NCBI GenBank assembly: GCA_964270895.1
Contig: OZ185435.1
Reading direction: 5' to 3' (one strand)
DNA: 64,000 nt
DNA from: Podarcis filfolensis
Taxonomy: Eukaryota
Position numbers and translations under genes: made by a program. The notes under the pieces were generated by a model. That model did not search any database. It saw nothing but the letters and a program-made list of their open reading frames with translations, and was not told the DNA's origin. Below, piece by piece: positions 45,913-57,900 of the stretch (its first letter is position 1; every line of letters starts with the position of its first letter).

Positions 45913-47513
45913 GAAGGACCAGTATTCCAGCAAATCAGCCTACTTCACCGCTCAGTGGCTGCGAGGAAGCCTGCAAATGGAGTCCCTTTGGTGGTAGGCC
46001 ACTTCGATCCAAAGGGTTCACTTCCCTTGGTGGGACCAAGGATTCCTCAAGTAACGCAGTGCCTAAGATGTCTCCATTGGTGTTTTTGAGGTGAAGACAA
46101 GCTACCTCCCAAACGAATTCACAATTATCCTTCAGCTTCCCCACTCCTCCAAATTTTGCAATACAGTCCTTGGTTCCCAAAATGCATTAAGATTATTTTT
46201 TTTTAGGAGGAAATGCATTTAGAGATGCATACCCTGTGATAAATACTATTTAAATATGCATTTATAATAAAATGCATTTTTAAATACGAATTTTTGTATG
46301 GATTTTTTAAATTAAAAAAATACAGATCTTAAAGTGGAAAAGCAACAGAGCAGACTTAACACCTGTAACACTTTGGACATGGACCCCAAATAAACTGATC
46401 CGTCCATCCCTAGCTCACACAAGGCAACTCCATGAGCTTCCTTGTAACTCAGTCAAGAAGGAGATTGCAGTGAGTAACAGAGGAGGGCAGTTTGTCTTGG
46501 AAGTGCTGTCTTTATGAGGCAAAGTCTGCCTTTCTGGGGACCAGCTGGTAACTATTTTAAGTATAAAAAGGAGGAAGGCAGCAGGAATGAAGACACACTT
46601 CCTGTTCCAGAAGATGATACTATAGGAGAAGACGGAAGAGAATCTTATCTTGGGGCTCTTGTAGTCTCCAAGACCTGTGACACATCCTCTCCCACAAGCA
46701 CAGGACTCTGCCAGCCATGTAAGCCTGGTGCTGAAGGAGTCATGTGCAGGGTAGAAGAGCAAATGCTCAGCAGACAGGGTCAGCCAGTTAAAACTGGCTG
46801 GGTAAGGCTTTGGGTAACGCTGGGGTCATGCTTACTAGGGAGTGGTCTGGGGTATATATACATATGGACTTCTGCCTCCTTTGGTCATGCTGGTTTGCAG
46901 CATTTAACACAGAAGCTGAAGATCTGGTTCTGTCCTTGTTGACTGTTCCTGGTTCCATGCAGGCTCCTCTGAGATTGTAGGAGGGGATGGGTAACTTGGC
47001 AGGTATGGAGAAAAAGTAGCATGATGGGTGAGTGCAGCAAGACGTGGGTGTAGTTAAATTACAAGGCACTGTTACTTTATATTCTTTTAGAGAGTAGCTC
47101 AAAAAAAATAAAGGGGAGAGCAGATTCCCCTAGCCCTGTATCTTCTTGGGGTTGGAGAGAGAACAAGGAGATGATACCCCAAGTGAGAGGAGCATAGAGA
47201 ACCATATTTCCCATCTGAGCATTTGCTGAGCCTCATTTGTCTTCTCCTCTTTCCCTGCAGGCTCGATCCAGCCCTAGTTCGCCCTGGCCGGGTGGACCTG
47301 AAGCAGTACGTGGGGTACTGCTCAGAGTGGCAGCTCGGGCGCATGTTCCAGAGGTTCTACCCAGACCAGCCAGCAGCTGCGGCCGAGGAGTTTGCCAAAC
47401 AGGCCGTGTCTGCCTCTGATCGGATCAGTGCCGCGCAAGTCCAAGGCCACTTAATGCTATACAAGGCGGATCCAGACGCAGCCCTTAAGAACGTGCAAGC
47501 TCTTATATCCTGA
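41521..47513 (+). CDS. BCS1L: Mitochondrial AAA chaperone BCS1 (complex III Rieske protein insertion), 7 coding exons, 419 aa
   Basis: Exons 41521-41840, 41988-42127, 42688-42882, 43598-43661, 43866-44035, 45260-45377, 47261-47513 sum to 1260 nt. N-terminus [26 protein letters not shown], Walker [10 protein letters not shown], Walker B IILLEDVD, and RPGRVD. Confidence 0.97.
44395..44785 (+). mobile_element. L2-like LINE 3' fragment in a BCS1L intron
   Basis: gggagg...gagggtgttcc...cccacttgtggaatgctct...caggtaaaaact...ttttgtgagttacctcg...aataaat layout. Confidence 0.5.
45876..45908. repeat. (CA)n microsatellite
   Basis: Direct reading. Confidence 0.9.
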
Positions 47514-48063: not shown

Positions 48064-48285
48064 TATACCCTTTAAAGATAGAATCTGTCTGCTGGCCTTA
48101 CAATCAAGACTTTTACCATTTAAAATATGTATTTGCCAATAGGTAAATGTTGTGCGTGCCTGGCCTTGTTTCTCTTTCAGGCTATGGCAAAAGTCTCGTG
48201 AGCTGAAGTGGTTTTTACTGACCATCGCAAAAGTATCTGGCTCTTTCACACTGACCACGCTCCTCTTTTGGAACAGGGGTACGCG

Positions 48286-51200
48286 TCAGAATATCACATC
48301 ATAACTGACCAGGTAGCCATCATTGTACATGTATAGCTTGTGATCATTGGGGTTGTAGCTTATGCTTTGCGGTGTGCCTGTGAGCTTTTCCAGGATGATG
48401 TCCATAGAGCCTTCTGTGGCTGTGTTAGTGTCATATTTGTAAAAGATCTTCTCCTTGTGTTCACTCACCCGCATCAAGGCATACATCACCCCACAGATCA
48501 TGAAGGTACCGGTTGCCTTAGGCTTGTACAGTGAGGTTTGCCATGACTTGACTATTGTCAAAGTATTGGGATCCAGCTGCCCAATCATTATTTTCCCCTT
48601 GTTTTTTTCTGTGGAGTAAATGAGGCACAGTCCATTCTCATCCCCGGAGAAATCAAAGTCCTGCCAATTGATTCCGCTATAAGAGTACCAGTTGTTGAAC
48701 ATGGCGTCTTCGACGGCCTTGCGGTGGACCTTACTGGTTGCCACATCCAGCTTGCACAGGTTCCTGGAGTTGTAGCAGTTGTAATAGAAGCTGCCGTTGT
48801 ACAAAATAGTTCCGCTTCCCTGCCCACAGTTGATGTAGTTCCAGGTGAACCCAACAAACTCAGAAAGGCTTTTCTCTATTTGGTTTTTGTAGAGCAGCAG
48901 GTCGGAATAGGAGTTGTAGATGTGGTAGGTTTCTAACAAACGCTCGTCTGTGTTGAGCGGGGCAACCCAGTATGCGTCAGGATTCTTGTTTCCAACAGCA
49001 AAGTCCTTTCCCCAAGCTCCGAATTTGTAGCTTAAACCTCACCAGTTGAGTTTCACTATAAGTGGCTTGCTAACATTTATCAACACCTTGTTGTCGCAGT
49101 TACCTGCCAGGGAATAGAAAGGGAATTACTTTTGTTTGTGGCTCCTCTTGACAAGTTTTTCTCCGCCTTCAAACTGCTCTGAGGTTTTTTGTGTGTGTTT
49201 TTTAACAATCAAGAGGTGCATAAATTTTACAAGATAAGTAACTAAATCATCTTTGTTTTCTGTGACCATGTTAGGCATTCTGCTTGTTTCAAAAGCTCTG
49301 CCAAGTTTCATCCCACTGCATTTAGAAAACGGGTCAGGCCCCCAACCCAGACTCCTCTGCCCTGCCGTGTTTTCTCTGCATAATGCTTCCCAATTCCTCC
49401 TCTGTACTGTCATTGATCAGCTGTTCATTACATGTTTGCCTTCCAAAATTCTCACTAAAGCAGGTGGTCATCATCCCTTTTGGGATCATTTGCAAACCTG
49501 AGAACTGCTGTGAGCACTAAGCACAAGCACATGCTACATTCTATTAGTAAGTGCAACAGAATGCTTCTTTCAAGTCTAATGTCAAATGGCGGGGGGACCC
49601 TGTGGCACCAGAAGGGTTCTGCAGGCCTCTTTATAATATAAAGAACTATTAAGTGGGAGGTAATCCAGTCATTATTAGGAAATTCCTTTTACCCTGATCT
49701 CTACCGGTACAGGCTGAGAACTGATCTAGTGAAAGAGCTCAAGGCTTAAACCATAAAATTTTCCTGGGTCAGGTGGTGCCTCAAATAGCTCGCTGAGGAT
49801 GTGCCAGTTATGAGAAGAAGCTGGGTTAAGTTTGTAGGGTGTCCAGACTGAAGCAAGCATTCTCAGTGGTGGCTCCCTGTTTGTAGAGCGCTTTCCCCAG
49901 GGAGGCATGCCTTGTTCGCCTCTTCTTCATAAATAGTGGTCAGGTTCTTATAAGCGTTTTCCAGGATAACCATCAGATGTGAAGGAAAAGTAGTGTCGGG
50001 GAGTTTTATGCTGCAGATACATTTATTGTCTTCGTCATCACTTGCTATTGGTCCATCGTGGAAGATGATGTGATCTGCAGCAACCTGGGATGATGGATGC
50101 AGAAAGGCAAATGGGATGCTTCATCGCTTGATTTAGCCCTTTCTCATAACCTGATAGTCAACTAAGGTCAGGATAGTTTCCTGAGAACAGCAACCTGTTC
50201 AGGAAAGAGCTGATTGGTCAGCTTTAAAGATATTGGGATTCTAAGGATGTCATACCATTCACATTTACCTGAGCTGGGAGTAAGGTCCACTGAACTCAGC
50301 AAGGCTCACTTCCCTTCTGAGTATAGGATTGCACTGTAGATTCCATAGAAACTCTGTTGATACTTCCTTACTGGTTTCATTATATTTATTAAACAGAACA
50401 CCGATTGTCCATTACTGATCACTGTTTTGAATGGAGAGAACTCCCTACACATTATGTGTGCATGGGATATTTTTAGAAGAAGCTTGTTCTGTTCCTGGCG
50501 CTAATAGGTACTCGTTGCAGGGGAAACCTGGCTATCTATGGTAGCATAGACAGTATGTACTAGCCTAGGGTCGCTTACAGTTATTGGAACTGTTAGCTAA
50601 CTTCAAAGGACAGAGAAGCTCTTTATTGTGACTTGGCTTGGAGATCTGGCAATGCTGCTTCCTGCAGTGAGTGAAACTTACTGCAAAGGCAACAAAGCAG
50701 AGATAACTTGTGACCATTATGTCTAACCTCTGCTCTTATCTATTAGATGGAAGATATGTGTTGTAAGACACAAGGCACACAACCCTATCAGGATTTAATA
50801 TAAAATATCACTAAGATGGTTCTGCCACTTTTATTAGCAGGGGGTGCCTGGCGCTGCCTGGGAATTTTTAGAAACCTGTTGTTGTTATTTTTAAACGGAG
50901 TGTAATTTGTGAGTTTAGACATGTCCCGCCAAAAATTGGGTGAAGTCATGCCAAAGTCATGTTTTGGTCTGCCATCATGATTCAAGATGGTGTCCAGGAA
51001 GCCTTTGTAGAGTGGGGGGAGCCAGGCATACCTCAGAGGGCTAAGCCAGCTGGGCGACGGGGCAGGGGTTTGCTGGACTGTCATGCCAATAATACCCCAT
51101 TCCTCCCAGTCAACAGGGGACTTCTGCCATGGGTCTCAGACAAGCTCTGCACAGGCTTGGCATCCAGCATCCAAACATTGCCAAAGATTGCTGCCCCCAT

Positions 51201-51308
51201 CTTGGGAACCCTTGTGCAATGTTTCATTTTGATCTCGACAGATGACTGAACCTGTGCCAAAAATGGGCAAAGTAACACCAAAATAATGTCTTGGTTCACT
51301 ATTTTCAT
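48286..51308 (-). pseudogene. Olfactomedin-4-like secreted glycoprotein gene with one in-frame premature stop (pseudogene or null allele)
   Basis: Signal-peptide exon 51308-51252 (MKIVNQDIILVLLCPFLAQ). Exon 50084-49911 (VAADH...KCICSIKLPDTTFP...EEEANK, matching the OLFM4 CQCSVSLPDTTFP motif). Terminal exon 49103-48286 encodes a full olfactomedin domain (GNCDNKVLINVSKP, YWVAPLNTD, GQGSG, WQDFDFSGDENGL, FMICGVMY, YNPNDHKLYMYNDGYL) with TGA at 49041-49039. Confidence 0.85.
49855..49905 (+). mobile_element. Short L2-like fragment abutting the olfactomedin exon-2 donor
   Basis: Its reverse complement cctccctggggaaagcgctctacaaacagggagccaccactgagaatgc matches ccttccctggggagagcatttcacaaacagggagccaccacagaaaacgc at about 20589-20640 in the L2 copy. 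Confidence 0.7.
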
Positions 51309-51396
51309 TCAAAATGGTGCCCATTACCCAAACATCAATGTACACACTCACTCTTCCCACCTTGGAAATACTTGTGTCGAGTTTAGGCAGTGGAAG

Positions 51397-51475
51397 ACAG
51401 GAGTGCCTGGCGTGCTCTGGTCCATGGGGTCACGAAGAGTCAGACACGACTAAAAGACTAAACAACAACAAACAA
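51397..51475 (+). mobile_element. Bov-B (RTE) LINE 3' tail
   Basis: ggagtgcctggcgtgctctggtccatggggtcacgaagagtcagacacgactaaaagactaaacaacaac matches the Bov-B 3' end and its (CAA) tail. Confidence 0.75.
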
Positions 51476-51660
51476 CCACATATATATGTGTGCGCGCGCA
51501 GTAAGCTACGTATGCCGTAAACAGCACTGCCAGATCTCTAACGATTCCCAAGTCTGTTTGATCTGAGTTAATGGTTACAATGAGGTTCTCCGTGCAGGCT
51601 GGGTTAGGACGTACTGTTAGTGCCATTGAGTGTTCTCCTTGAGGCGGGTGGTTCCACTTC

Positions 51661-51668
51661 TATTTATA
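51661..51668 (-). promoter_or_regulatory. Candidate TATA box for the olfactomedin-like gene
   Basis: TATAAATA on minus, about 350 nt upstream of the signal-peptide ATG. Confidence 0.3.
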
Positions 51669-54640
51669 GCAACACCCAGGTGTGAAACAGCACTTGCTCT
51701 TCTTGCCAATGTTACAACAGCAAAACATGGAAAGGGGGAATTGTTCTTTCATACATTGGGGGGGGGTGGAGAGAGAAGATACTTGAGGTATTAGTTTTAA
51801 CCCAGGGTGGGACAGTAACTCTAATATATCACAAATAGGCGAAAGCATGGGAAAGACTAGGAAGGTTCAGGAAGAAACAGATCCTGCACTTCAGAGATTT
51901 TATAAAAGAAATTGCTGGATGTGGACATGATGGAAGAAAATGGGGTGGGTTTATGAAATGAGGGCGAGAGTCCTCAAAGGATCGAGAGCAGTTGGTAAAA
52001 AGGAAGGCAGAACAATTAGGAGACAGCAAAACAATAGAAGGGGAAAGTGTCAAGCAGAGGATGTGATCAACAGCACAGATCCAGAAGCCTTGAGACCTAC
52101 TCAAAGAAGGCACAGCCATTCACCAAGGATGTCAGAATGAAAAAAAAAAGCAGCAGCTGTTTCCTCCATTAGTACGCTGTGTATGCCCTATAATCAAACA
52201 CTTATTAATAGTGATGGATATTTTTTAAGGATCTCAACAGTCCTAGAGAGCAAATGGGGCAAACAGTATTTTGTTCACCTTCAGTCCCACAACATGGTAC
52301 CCTCACTCCTTTGCTCCTCTTGTCCCTTTATTTCCCAGCCTCATCCCTTCCTACTTGTCTAATGTTTGGCTCCTGTTCCAGTTTTGAGCACGTTCATCTC
52401 TCTCTTCTGCCATACCTCTCGCATGGCACCCTCCCATTACACATTTCGAAGGGATTCAGTTGCATATCAGAAAAATAAGTCTATACAATTCAAGTGGAAT
52501 AAGTGCTTTGCTGCAACAAAATCCACTTTTAAAAACCAGACTCTTTGCAATTTGGGAACTGCATGAAAATGTGTGGTATAAAAGATGGAAATATATATAG
52601 ATGGAAATATATATAACCTCCACACATCAGGATGAGTGTTCATCATTGTATAACCTCCCTTCAGATCAAGATGGCTGCTCAATAGGGCAGTCAGACATTG
52701 TATATCTGCACGTTTGGTTCAAGCAAATCAGGAAGACTGCTCAGTTTAACAGGTAATCTGAAATAATCCATCCAAGCTCAAATGAACAGTTTGTGTACTC
52801 TAATAAAGTAGCCTGTCATCCAGCTCTTACCTTCTTTTTTTTTTTTACCTAATGCACACTTACAGGAGCTATATGCACTTTGCTCACCAATTAGCCCTTT
52901 GGGTCAGTTTTTATGACCCAAGTCCCTAAGATGTATAGCTTTTAGGTATTCCTGGACCTGGACCTATGTCGGTATTATAACCCTGTCCAGAAAATCCAAT
53001 CAGGATCTAGATACTGTGTTACCCATGTTTTATATTCTATGTAGGCTACCATTCATTATTGTTCAGAAGTTTCAAGTGGTGCAAAATGAAGCAGCCTTTC
53101 TCCTTAGAAGAATAGTTTACAAAAAAAAGAGGGGAAAAATGTGAATCCAACAGAAAGATGTCCAGATTAGAACCCGATTGTTTTTCATTTATAATCAAAA
53201 GGTTCCTCATTTTAGCTAAACTACATGGGTCATAGGTTATTACCTCCCTGCCTCTTTTTAGATGGTTTCTAATGTTGAATGGTCTCATCACATGCAGCAC
53301 AGCAGCTATGTTCTTTATCCACGAAAGAGAATCATAGATTGGTTTACTCAAATTGCTTTTAATACTCCTGTTTTGCATCACATCACCACAAATTCCACCT
53401 CACCACAGTGCAGGGAGGTAAATCAATCTCACATCAATCCTTTTAATAGGCAGAACTGCTCAAACTGGTATATGTGCATGCATGCAATAAGTAATGACAT
53501 CCTTTAGCCTCTAGCATGAACTGGTTTAAAATCAGTCACACTTCTATTGTAAGGTCATTTTGGCCACTGTGCTCTGTAAAGTTGTCACACACCTACAATG
53601 TTACTGTGGCTAAGCAGAAAAGGAAAATTATGAAGTCTGGCAAAGCTTCACTTGGGGAGGGGTGGGGGGACATTTTGCAGACATATAAGGAATTTAAGCA
53701 GCTTGGGAACTTTCACACAGCCTAGGGTAAAATTTGTTGTGGGGGGAGGAAGGCCATAAATATGTGACAAAATAGAAATACAAGTGGAGGAAAGTCTGTT
53801 CAAAATGTTTGCATAGTGGCCACATGTACTCCATATTACTACAGATTCCTCCTCTGAGCAGAAATACCCATGAAGACAAGGCTGCATTTTGCTGAGGGAG
53901 ATGACAGGGACTGTGTAGCCTAAAAATAGGTAGGTACATTGGTATTACCCTCCCAAATGGAGAGTAGGGCTGTTCTCGAATGGTGTGTGGGTGAATGCAC
54001 ATACACAAAGCCATAAGGTTAGGAGGGGAAAGCCAGTTGAGCATGAGAGACTTCTCACCCCAACAAAACCAAATTTGGCTCGAATCAAAGATGATAAGAC
54101 CCAAAACGTAAGTCACGTGAACTCTGGACAGGATTACAGCTAGTAAACCATTGCAGGATATCACATTTGTGAAAACAGGCAAAGACAAGAGCCTTGGTGT
54201 ACCTGGAGCTGAAGCCTTTGTTGCCAATACTAGCTCCAAATCCAACTACTGGGTGAGTAAGGAGTTGGACTTATTATAATTTAAAGGCCCTTTAGAATAG
54301 GCATGTTTGATGTTTGCAGTTCAAGGTCAATCACTACTGAACATTAGCCAATTACAATGAGGCAGTGGGAGACTCCAACATTCAGTCTGGCCACAGTTGG
54401 GGGGCTTAAAGAACCCTCTGTGGTCAACAGCCACCAAGTCAATGTTGATTCAAGTCCACTCTTTTCACATATGCCAATACCATCAATAAGGCATGTCTAA
54501 AAATAGTGACACTATTAATGGCAAGTCCTCTCCATGGTTCTGGACAGTAAACAAGGAGACCTGTACTCCCTTATGGTCCTTCTATTTTTAGCACCTATTT
54601 TAGAACAGGGTTACTTAATAGTTATTTTTCAAGCTTGGCT

Positions 54641-54742
54641 TTTATTCAGTGATTCAGCCTCAAACAGTCCTCTACACAGCACTGATTCACTGTAAGATCC
54701 TACAGTTTACCCATGGGCAATAGCATTTGGCTACCATTTATT
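54641..54742 (-). terminator. Candidate poly(A) signals for RNF25
   Basis: TTTATT (AATAAA on minus) at 54641-54646 and 54737-54742. Confidence 0.45.
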
Positions 54743-54940
54743 ATTCAGTTATTTACTACAGTCCACAGACAGTAATTCTGATCTCTGAGGACAATATACC
54801 CCTATTCTGCAAGACATAAACCACCCATGGCCGAGAGGAGAATTTCAAGACAGATCTGCTTTTCCGTACAATCAAGGCCAATGGTTGACAGCACAACAAA
54901 ATCACCAGTGTTCATCCCTAGAAAAAGCCCCTCAAGCCTG

Positions 54941-57900
54941 CTAGGAGCCATCCTCAGTCTCTTGGCTCTGCAGCTCTCTCCTTGAGTTCAATGTGGTGCG
55001 TCCTCGGCCTCTTGGCACTTTAATATAAGATCCATGTTCTCTGCCCTTGGTCTTTTCCCACTGCCTACAATCCTGCATCCCACGGCGACCCTGCCACTTG
55101 GCCGACCCCCTGAGCTCATTATGGCTAACCTCCAAGTTTACTTCCTCACTGTCATGGGCTTGACTTTTCTGCTCCTGCGTCCATTTCCCCACAACATTTT
55201 TCTCCTCTCTCAAATACATTCCCTCTTTGGTTGGTGAGATTCCTCTGGTGCGCAGCTCTTTTTTCTCCACCAGTGAAGACACTTGGTCTCTGCTGCAAGA
55301 TTTTGAGAAGTCTTGATTGTACCTCCCATAGCTTCGCTGTCCCCTCTCCTTTCTCCAGTTGGGTCTTCTACTGAAGGTTCTGGATTTTCCCTCAACAGTG
55401 AGAAGACAATGAGTTTCTGCTGGTGTCTCCAGTGACTTGTAGCGCAGCTGCCAGCCAGGGCCTTGTATAGATGGTTTCTCCTCTCGAGTCCTCTCTCTCT
55501 TGCTATGGAAGTGCAAAGGGACAGGCGGTCTCTCTGGTTTTTCAGGTTCATTCCTCACTGGAACAGCAGCCTCTGCAGTTCCTTGGGTATGTTCTGAGCC
55601 TACTGATGGCCTCAGTTCCTTGTCAGTATCCAGAACATTTTCTGAGATGGCTACTTGTTCATGTTCAGTGGTATCTGGGGGCTAAAAATGATAGAAACCA
55701 AAATGAAGGGCAGAAAATGCATAAACCCAGCAGGCTTGATTCTCAGTCTGAGTGGCAAAGATCCCACAGGAATTAATATATCGATGTCGCCCCATCTGTC
55801 TTCCCCAGCCTTTGCTGCTTAAATCTTTACCTATAGTAACTTGCAAACTTGCCAGCAACAAGTGTCATCAGCACTTTAAAAGAATTGCCTAGGATGCAAA
55901 TATCAAAGCTCTCTCTTGTGCTACAAGACAGGATGTCTCAGCAAGTAAAAATTGCTACCTCCATTGTTTCATTCTTTCCCTATGACCATTATCCTCTTAG
56001 TACTCCTGCTGCCTGCACTAACCTTTTGCAGGCTGATGAAGTAGCGATTTCTTTCTGCTTCAGGGTCAATGATGCCTCCTTTCTCCTGCTGCTTCTGATA
56101 GATCAGGCGCAGTTGTTCTCTGTGCTGCAGTGTCTGTGTGTCAGGTTGGTACACCTCCTGAGGAAAGAGAGGCATGTAATTAGATGACTGGCCCAAACAG
56201 AGCCTTCTGGGTCTCTCCAGATCTGATGGGCAAAGAGGCTGCCGGGGGGGCAGGCAGAGAGAAAGACTGGGGGGAAAATGCAGCCTCCCACCTCCTTACA
56301 CAGGCAAGAGCATCTCATTAGTAAAACTCCAGTCACAGCATGCTCCTCCCAGAGGATTCTTAGTTAGAACCTAAGCTGGTATTTCTAAACACAACTAAAT
56401 GTACTACCTATTGTGTAACAGGGAAGCAAAGACACGGGTTGACTATATCTGTTGTTTCACTCTGTTAATACTTTTTGCCTAAATGAAGAAGGGGTGTGAA
56501 ACTAGCCTGCTATACAAACAATAAAATTTCTATGTGGCCCCTGGAAGGTTGAATAGAAAGGAAGACAGCTCCCTGGCTGAAAATAATTTCCTCTCCCTGG
56601 TGTAGAAGTAAAAATTGGGAAGAATGTTAGAACTCATAGCCACCTGCAGACGTACAGAGCACCAGGTATATGATTATTTGGAAATAACACTTAACAGAGC
56701 TCATTTGGAGAAATGGGGTTGCCCAACAGGTCCAATAAGTGAGAGAGATTAGTGAAGCAAGAGGCTGCCTGCCTGGTGCATCTTTTAAAGAGCAGCAAGT
56801 CCATGTGAAAGGTCTGTTTTGAAAGTTTCCTTACCATTGGCTGCTGTGGAGGTGGTGCTGCTTGCAATGTTGCAAGATCATAAACCAGAGGCTCCCTGCA
56901 CACAGGGCACTGCACTTCAAATTCCTGTACACAAGGTAATAACAACAAAATTCGGCCTTGGTTAGACCTAGTCATGGGATATACAGCTACTGTTCTCATA
57001 CTCCGCCAGTGTGTCTTAAGAGAGTAATATTTTCCTGATAAACTGCTACTCATCCTGGGGAGCTCTAGCACTCAACAACAGTGTTACTGGCAGAAGAGTG
57101 CTGTGCAGTTTGACTACAAGGATCACGGGGCAGCCTGGATTCTGAGCTCATCATCCAAGCCTCCTGGGAACTTAGTTAACTTCATTCTATAAACATCCAT
57201 CAGTAAAGCGTTCTCTTTTATAAGATGCTACTGGGCCTTCCTAACGCAATCACAACTTGCATCAAAGCTAGTGCAAAAATTATCTCAGAGTGAAGATTTA
57301 CCACTAGCAACCCTGCCCTCAGAACTGTTCTATTGTTTGGGAGTGGAGGAAGATAACTTTTGTTTCTTGGCAAAGCTTTTTTGTGTATGTTGAAGTCCAT
57401 TCACAATCTTTTCCACCAAGAAACACACCAACACAGGTGTTCAATGAGATATAATGTGAGTTTACTTTTTGGTCACTTGCACTGCAGCTGCGAAGATTGC
57501 TTTTATCTACAGAACCCCAGTTCTTTAGTATTTGAAGCAAAGGAAGATATGTTGACCATCTCCTCTGGTCTTTAACTAGATTCCCAGACTTTACACATCA
57601 CTTAACATTTTGTTCTCTGTAGACAAAATAACTTGCAAATGTGAAAGTATGCACAGCACTGAACCATGGAAAACCATTTCAACATTTATCTGGGAAAATC
57701 CTGTCCACAGCTCTCAACGCCATAACTAATAACCAAAATGAACTGGAAATGTTGATTCAGATTCAGATTCAGAAGCCATTCCTGGAGGAAAAAGTTGGTG
57801 AAGTTCTAGAAGCAGCTGTGGGGTGCATGCAAGGAGCTATTACCTCTTTGGGCAGAGGTGCCAAAGGCTGTACTCTTTCTTTCCTCTCTGCACGGATCTC

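Follow-up and report, generated by a model that had tools for sequence, protein, structure and literature searches.

A probable pseudogene of a squamate olfactomedin-like gene beside BCS1L in the lizard Podarcis filfolensis

Introduction

Frog olfactomedin is a secreted, disulfide-linked glycoprotein of the olfactory mucus and belongs to subfamily V of the olfactomedin proteins, whose CxC motif is associated with intermolecular disulfides (Anholt 2014, PMC4206993). Here we analyse a 64,000-nucleotide stretch of the genome of the lizard Podarcis filfolensis (assembly GCA_964270895.1, contig OZ185435.1; hereafter the window), which contains an olfactomedin-like locus between the genes BCS1L and RNF25. 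An original prediction, made from the letters of this stretch, had described at this place an 'interloper': a three-exon gene for a secreted OLFM4-like protein, either a lineage-specific arrival or an ancient paralog lost in mammals. A literature search turned up nothing on this lizard locus.

We find that the locus is very probably a pseudogene, orthologous to a squamate gene of five exons that is annotated elsewhere as 'olfactomedin-like'. We call this gene A and its tandem paralog gene B, both labels being our own. The window was compared with loci from Podarcis muralis (L006), Zootoca (L007), Podarcis raffonei (L008), Phrynocephalus (L005) and Tiliqua (L011), and with the proteins of P. 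raffonei (P0306), P. muralis (P0194) and Zootoca (P0190). In protein searches single exons were queried separately, and the stop-containing exon was queried in pieces.

Results

Surviving exons

Judged from its assembled sequence, the locus can encode no olfactomedin-domain protein, in disagreement with the secreted product that had been predicted for this genome. An uninterrupted spliceable frame is lacking because exon 2 lacks a GT donor, its end (phase 0) does not fit the start of exon 5 (phase 1), and exon 5 contains two TGA codons and one additional T. The proposed three-exon frame therefore cannot be joined, the coiled-coil exons also being absent.

Of the three minus-strand exons that had been proposed, the CxC exon and the exon of the olfactomedin (OLF) domain are genuine. 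The former (49911-50084, minus strand), corresponding to exon 2 of the ancestral gene, encodes the mature N-terminus in 58 open codons and carries the CxC motif of subfamily V (KCICS) followed by LPDTTFP. It is 88-92% identical to exon 2 of the lacertid relatives (91.8% to P0306 over a 61-aa match, 89.7% to P0194 and 87.9% to P0190), which bears out this part of the prediction, and bird and frog OLFM4-type N-termini match it at E 4e-6.

Ancestral exon 5, encoding the OLF domain and the C-terminal tail, occupies 48177-49103 on the minus strand, with the ancestral stop at 48179-48177. Ahead of it stand a polypyrimidine tract and the CAG acceptor (49106-49104), and in the window the predicted OLF exon extends to 48286. 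The 250-codon piece that follows the first internal stop (49038-48289) matches the Pfam OLF family (PF02191) at E 2.7e-66 over profile positions 15-246 of 246, and with the PDB structures of the myocilin and noelin OLF domains it aligns at E 1e-33 to 1e-31. The domain had been called complete; the Pfam match upholds its identity, but the frame of the whole domain is broken by a TGA. Including the tail, exon 5 is 97.7% identical at the amino-acid level to P0306, 95% to P0194 and 90% to P0190 (over approximately 302-306 aa); for the OLF piece the identity is 95.2% with P. muralis and 91.6% with Zootoca.

Loss of the coiled-coil exons

Gene A in relatives has five exons, mapped in four species: one for the signal peptide, one for the CxC motif, two for the coiled coil (approximately 128 aa together) and one for the OLF domain. 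In no relative is the CxC exon spliced directly to the OLF exon. The block that contains exons 3 and 4 in P. raffonei (L008 12519-15946), P. muralis (L006 11018-14911) and Zootoca (L007 11573-17143) is missing from the window, where the junction of a 3.4-3.9 kb deletion lies at 49910-49912 (minus strand) with AGG microhomology. The exon-2 donor, both coiled-coil exons and most of introns 2-4 are gone: the donor reads …CAAG/GTAAGG in relatives and …CAAG/GCATGCC in the window, the GT being lost, and the sequence past the junction is deep intron 4, joined cleanly. Read-through from exon 2 stops after 7 codons.

The surviving 3' part of intron 4 (49104-49909, minus strand) retains its polypyrimidine tract and CAG acceptor, and is collinear with P. 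muralis L006 14912-15771 and with P. raffonei L008 from 15947 onward. The acceptors of exons 2 and 5 are both intact. No remnant of a coiled-coil exon was found in 49104-49910 by tblastn with the proteins of Phrynocephalus, P. muralis, Zootoca, P. raffonei and about 30 others, or by sensitive blastn, and the coiled coil that subfamily V members have between the CxC motif and the OLF domain is missing from the window. Weak upstream extensions appeared in one search and were not reproduced with close orthologs. A processed retrocopy is ruled out, since ancestral intron sequence and splice acceptors are kept and the locus is orthologous to the position of the parent gene; the original prediction had likewise argued against a retrocopy from the presence of introns.

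Lesions in the OLF exon

Exon 5 carries four lesions. The first is an in-frame TGA at 49039-49041 (minus strand), 21 codons into the exon, in place of an ancestral CGA that encodes the arginine of an NW-R-G motif and is still CGA in P. muralis, P. raffonei and Zootoca; among homologs the residue at this site is mostly R, K or L. Because of this stop the listed open reading frame begins late and spans only 217 codons. Selenocysteine or read-through at this TGA is ruled out, as the close relatives all have CGA (Arg). The C>T change that created the stop also makes a GT in a donor-like context (CTG/GTGAGG, 49041-49044).

At 48625-48627 (minus strand) a TGC (Cys) replaces the TGG (Trp) of a DE-x-G-L-W motif, a change common to the window and P. 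raffonei, at a site where 262 of 271 motif-matching OLF proteins (approximately 97%) have tryptophan. A second TGA, at 48286-48288 (minus strand), again stands in place of an ancestral CGA, which is CGA in P. muralis and Zootoca and CCA in P. raffonei. It truncates a conserved 36-residue tail, which continues as RRVPLFQKRSV… in relatives. Finally, a +1 T frameshift at 48189-48192 (minus strand; four T against three in relatives) lies just before the ancestral stop.

Exon 5 is also altered in the other two Podarcis genomes. In P. raffonei (L008 17560-17700) a third CGA has become TGA at a point six codons short of the natural stop, and three exon-5 CGA codons are altered within this one genus. 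The OLF exon of P. muralis contains a 361-bp tRNA-derived short interspersed element (SINE; L006 15772-16132) with a 12-bp target-site duplication, TGATAAACGTTA. The annotated 513-aa P. muralis protein skips the SINE; its model moreover has one codon deleted and no signal peptide. To judge from these features of its sequence, gene A of P. muralis may be a pseudogene too.

Signal-peptide region

The signal peptide expected of a subfamily V protein is not found in the window, as the region corresponding to Zootoca exon 1 is deleted. The window is collinear with Zootoca on both sides of a scar at 50198-50202 on the minus strand (window 50810-50202 with L007 8339-8955; window 50198-49910 with L007 11284-11572), where 2.3 kb including ancestral exon 1 has been removed. 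Exon 1 of Zootoca (L007 10001-10039), whose peptide resembles the exon-1 peptides of other lizards, has no counterpart in the window or in P. muralis. P. raffonei is collinear with the window across the scar. P. muralis lacks an overlapping stretch with other breakpoints (L007 8372-11283, compared with window 50198-50810 and L006 9619-10324). Because the deletion breakpoints differ, the alignments suggest that the signal-peptide exon was lost twice independently, once in the lineage of the window and P. raffonei and once in P. muralis.

The signal peptide of the original prediction came instead from a first exon at 51252-51308 (minus strand), which has an ATG, a hydrophobic stretch and a phase-0 GT donor. 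The orthologous DNA of Zootoca has a TGA at codon 12 and is found over 2 kb upstream of the genuine exon 1; P. muralis lacks the stretch, which is unlike lizard exon-1 peptides and unused by the P. raffonei model. On this comparison 51308-51252 is best read as a chance open reading frame in non-coding DNA, and neither this exon nor its signal peptide can be upheld.

The P. raffonei model begins with other 5' exons, whose counterparts are present in the window on the minus strand. The first coding exon (52357-52413) encodes a hydrophilic peptide that matches P0306 residues 1-19 at 100%, and the second (51355-51426), found by tblastn with P0306 residues 21-44, presumably overlaps a SINE tail and encodes a hydrophilic peptide that is no signal peptide. 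Both are identical in DNA to L008. No canonical splice sites for these exons were seen by eye in the window.

Upstream of gene A, a 75-bp block of the window (50680-50754) is 75% identical to the agamid locus (L005 6982-7055). From its sequence it could be a conserved regulatory element that survives in the pseudogene.

Orthologous loci in lizards

With the post-stop piece as query, an exhaustive search of representatives found a 511-aa Phrynocephalus protein at 71% identity, and a word search returned exon-sized relatives and distant paralogs only. The Phrynocephalus protein in turn retrieved gene A orthologs from approximately 20 lizard species, annotated as protein-coding, mostly under the name 'olfactomedin-like', and spanning lacertids, an amphisbaenian, anguimorphs, iguanians, skinks, cordylids and geckos. 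The OLF piece is 61-78% identical to gene A of other lizard families, compared with approximately 50% to gene B. No snake proteins are among the listed orthologs, and gene A may have been lost in snakes. Two models deserve mention: Varanus P0006 (UniProt) looks like a chimera with the front of gene B and the back of gene A, and Phrynosoma P0187 (798 aa) contains two OLF domains; in both, tandem olfactomedin genes have probably been fused into one model.

The loci of P. raffonei and P. muralis align collinearly with the window DNA, at substitution divergences of 1.56% and 2.74%, respectively. In both of these species the gene order is RNF25, gene A, BCS1L, and in Zootoca and Phrynocephalus it is gene B, gene A, BCS1L. 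Gene A and BCS1L lie tail-to-tail in the window and in all four of these relatives, and RNF25 lies on the opposite side in the two Podarcis loci. The locus is thus no interloper confined to this genome. The original prediction had set its novelty against the finding of the same, already annotated gene at this position across amniotes; among lizards such a gene is indeed annotated, which covers part of that range.

Gene B stands upstream of gene A in Zootoca (578 aa), Phrynocephalus (550 aa) and Tiliqua (428 aa). It is absent from all three Podarcis loci (window 51400-54940; L006 5382-10001; L008 7462-10001), where RNF25 directly precedes gene A, and no second OLF gene was found in the window. 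The skink Tiliqua has a cytochrome P450 gene instead of BCS1L behind its B-A pair (L011 30976-38392). The heme-binding motif of this P450, FGYGVRGCVGHRIAELEM, would fit CYP27A1, a gene of the same human 2q35 neighbourhood, and the arrangement points to a local rearrangement inside one chromosomal neighbourhood. At the one frog locus, that of Dendropsophus, the neighbours of the nearest relative are a further OLF gene and a SPRY/AAA_33 gene instead of BCS1L, and in gecko and caecilian loci no neighbour was found within 10 kb of the relative.

Phylogenetic placement

In a maximum-likelihood tree of 60 sequences, gene A forms a clade of 20 entries that includes the window, with a support of 99 in the Shimodaira-Hasegawa-like approximate likelihood-ratio test (SH-aLRT); within it the window sequence is nearest to P. 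raffonei. The sister clade is gene B (99). Moving outward, this pair is joined by amphibian 'olfactomedin-like' proteins (88), an amphibian tiarin-type clade (96) and shark sequences (86). OLFM4 of mammals, a bird and amphibians forms a separate clade together with the lacertids' own OLFM4-type gene. When a smaller tree was rebuilt, the grouping of A, B and the amphibian genes received an SH-aLRT of 76. Forcing A and B together with OLFM4 costs 18.8 log-likelihood units and gives a borderline P of 0.052 in the approximately unbiased (AU) test, for a group that was chosen after the tree had been seen.

The OLFM4-like label of the original prediction therefore holds as far as the subfamily, which unites OLFM4, frog olfactomedin and tiarin, but the best trees place the gene, with moderate support, outside the OLFM4 clade proper. 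Turtle, crocodilian, bird and mammal proteins are absent from the best 120 matches of gene A, which include many amphibian and shark proteins. The trees favour, without proving it, that A and B represent an ancient paralog lost in mammals. This part of the prediction fits the placement with amphibian genes, but the AU test against an OLFM4 origin is borderline.

Selective constraint

Totalled over the Podarcis branches, exon 5 has about 17 non-synonymous changes, two of them the stops, against about 5 synonymous ones, where neutrality predicts approximately 3:1. On the path from Zootoca to the Podarcis stem the corresponding counts are 21:14, and Zootoca and Phrynocephalus have a pairwise ratio of non-synonymous to synonymous rates (dN/dS) of 0.15, at saturated dS. 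The changes on the window's own branch are too few to be read by themselves. Exon 5 of the window differs from that of P. muralis by approximately 2%, a value not distinctly lower than in the flanks (2.74%). Combined with the shared Trp-to-Cys change and the shared exon-1 loss, the near-neutral counts suggest that Podarcis could already dispense with gene A; the branch of the window species would later have acquired the deletion and the stops.

Flanking genes

The olfactomedin locus is bracketed, as had been predicted, by the end of BCS1L at 47513 and the end of RNF25 at 54941. The last coding exon of BCS1L (47223-47513, plus strand) is an open reading frame that matches the BCS1L genes of Phrynocephalus (L005) and Zootoca (L007); the BCS1L neighbours in relatives were recognised by Pfam BCS1_N/AAA. 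The last coding exon of RNF25 (54941-55558, minus strand) is likewise open and is collinear with the RWD/zf-RING genes of P. muralis (L006) and P. raffonei (L008). There is no run of N near the locus; one of 142 N, an assembly gap or masked stretch, lies at a distance, at 819-960.

Discussion

Taken together, these observations make it very probable that the locus is a decayed ortholog of gene A. In other lizards the protein of gene A has approximately 500 aa and combines a signal peptide and a CxC N-terminus with a coiled coil and an OLF domain, and gene B usually lies upstream. In the window gene B is missing, the signal-peptide exon of gene A has been lost, and a second deletion has taken out the exon-2 donor and both coiled-coil exons. 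The OLF exon has degraded through two CpG-type nonsense mutations, the +1 frameshift and the Trp-to-Cys replacement. From the missing signal peptide and the Trp-to-Cys change, both found in P. raffonei as well, we infer that decay began before the window species split from P. raffonei.

Several points weigh against this interpretation. The lesions come from one assembly, and P. raffonei gene A is annotated as protein-coding, which speaks against a gene already dead in the common ancestor. The dN/dS between the window and P. raffonei is 0.31 with stops excluded, from about ten changes, so that this pair by itself is no proof of neutrality. Of the first 301 codons of exon 5, 299 remain open, as does exon 2; inactivation on the window branch would therefore be recent.

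An RNA may still be made from this pseudogene, starting at upstream exons of the P. raffonei type and possibly with a regulatory role, a scenario that is compatible with decay of the coding gene and that we consider unlikely. It draws on the base-for-base identity of the two P. raffonei 5' exons in the window and on the intact acceptors of exons 2 and 5. The 5' exons, however, show no canonical splice sites to the eye, and exon 2 has lost its donor.

That the gene is functional in the species, the lesions being assembly errors or those of one assembled null haplotype, is quite improbable. The lesions are known from one assembly, the three point lesions are all single-base changes, and the closest relative, P. 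raffonei, retains exons 3-4 and a CGA at the site of the first stop. Errors or a single null allele would nevertheless have to account for five independent lesions on one haplotype, including a clean deletion junction with microhomology and no Ns, in a region whose flanking genes are undamaged, as is a ZNF142 exon of 1085 codons. Moreover, the loss of exon 1 and the Trp-to-Cys change recur in the independent P. raffonei assembly, and substitutions across Podarcis look neutral.

An intact three-exon secreted OLFM4-like gene, newly inserted between BCS1L and RNF25 in this lineage, has next to no likelihood left: the CxC and OLF exons are indeed real and in good condition, and the proposed first exon does offer an ATG, a hydrophobic stretch and a phase-0 GT donor, but that exon is not conserved as coding sequence, the in-frame TGA, missing exon-2 donor, phase mismatch and deletion of exons 3-4 preclude a product, and the gene occupies the same place in other lacertids and an agamid.

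The decay of gene A may extend beyond the window species. Gene B is gone in three of three Podarcis genomes, exon 1 was deleted twice, P. muralis carries a SINE in its OLF exon, and the window has its own deletion and stops; on these grounds we tentatively raise the possibility, for which the odds are somewhat short of even, that an ancient pair of olfactomedin genes of the nasal-mucus type is being lost in Podarcis, each species having its own set of lesions. The P. raffonei and P. muralis models, both annotated as protein-coding and lacking a signal peptide, may also be pseudogenes. Snakes, too, may lack gene A; if so, these losses would form a natural knockout series in a gene family with a hitherto untested function in olfactory mucus. 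The several independent lesions also date a gene loss within one genus.

For the window itself, the result mainly corrects the record: the supposed interloper is an ordinary, already annotated squamate gene, here a recently inactivated remnant. By analogy with frog olfactomedin and OLFM4, we infer that intact gene A makes a secreted, disulfide-linked glycoprotein of the mucus type. Among amniotes, squamates at least appear to have kept a frog-olfactomedin-type paralog that mammals and birds seem to lack.

The closest counterparts of the window locus are the RefSeq olfactomedin-like genes of P. raffonei (XP_053231030.1), P. muralis (XP_077779540.1) and Zootoca vivipara (XP_034966191.1), which lie at the orthologous position, with RNF25 or gene B on one side and BCS1L on the other. 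Exons 2 and 5 share 90-98% amino-acid identity with them and the flanking DNA is collinear. These genes keep exons 3-4 and an open OLF frame, whereas the window copy has the deletion, two stops and the frameshift; among the three, only Zootoca keeps the signal-peptide exon. Lacertids also have an OLFM4-type gene (the cluster of P0039) on a separate, smaller chromosome-scale record; in the best trees it belongs to the OLFM4 clade, and the window gene falls outside. OLFM4 proper is of the same subfamily and shares the CxC-LPDTTFP N-terminus, with 45-49% identity in the OLF domain. Xenopus tiarin, of the same subfamily, is approximately 42% identical to gene A and does not belong to the nearest clade; it represents the amphibian clade next outside the group formed by the squamate and 'olfactomedin-like' genes. 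Bullfrog olfactomedin and the amphibian 'olfactomedin-like' proteins (subfamily V, PMC4206993) have the same layout of signal peptide, CxC motif, coiled coil and OLF domain as the intact lizard orthologs, and in the trees they are the sister group of squamate A and B, at approximately 40-45% identity.

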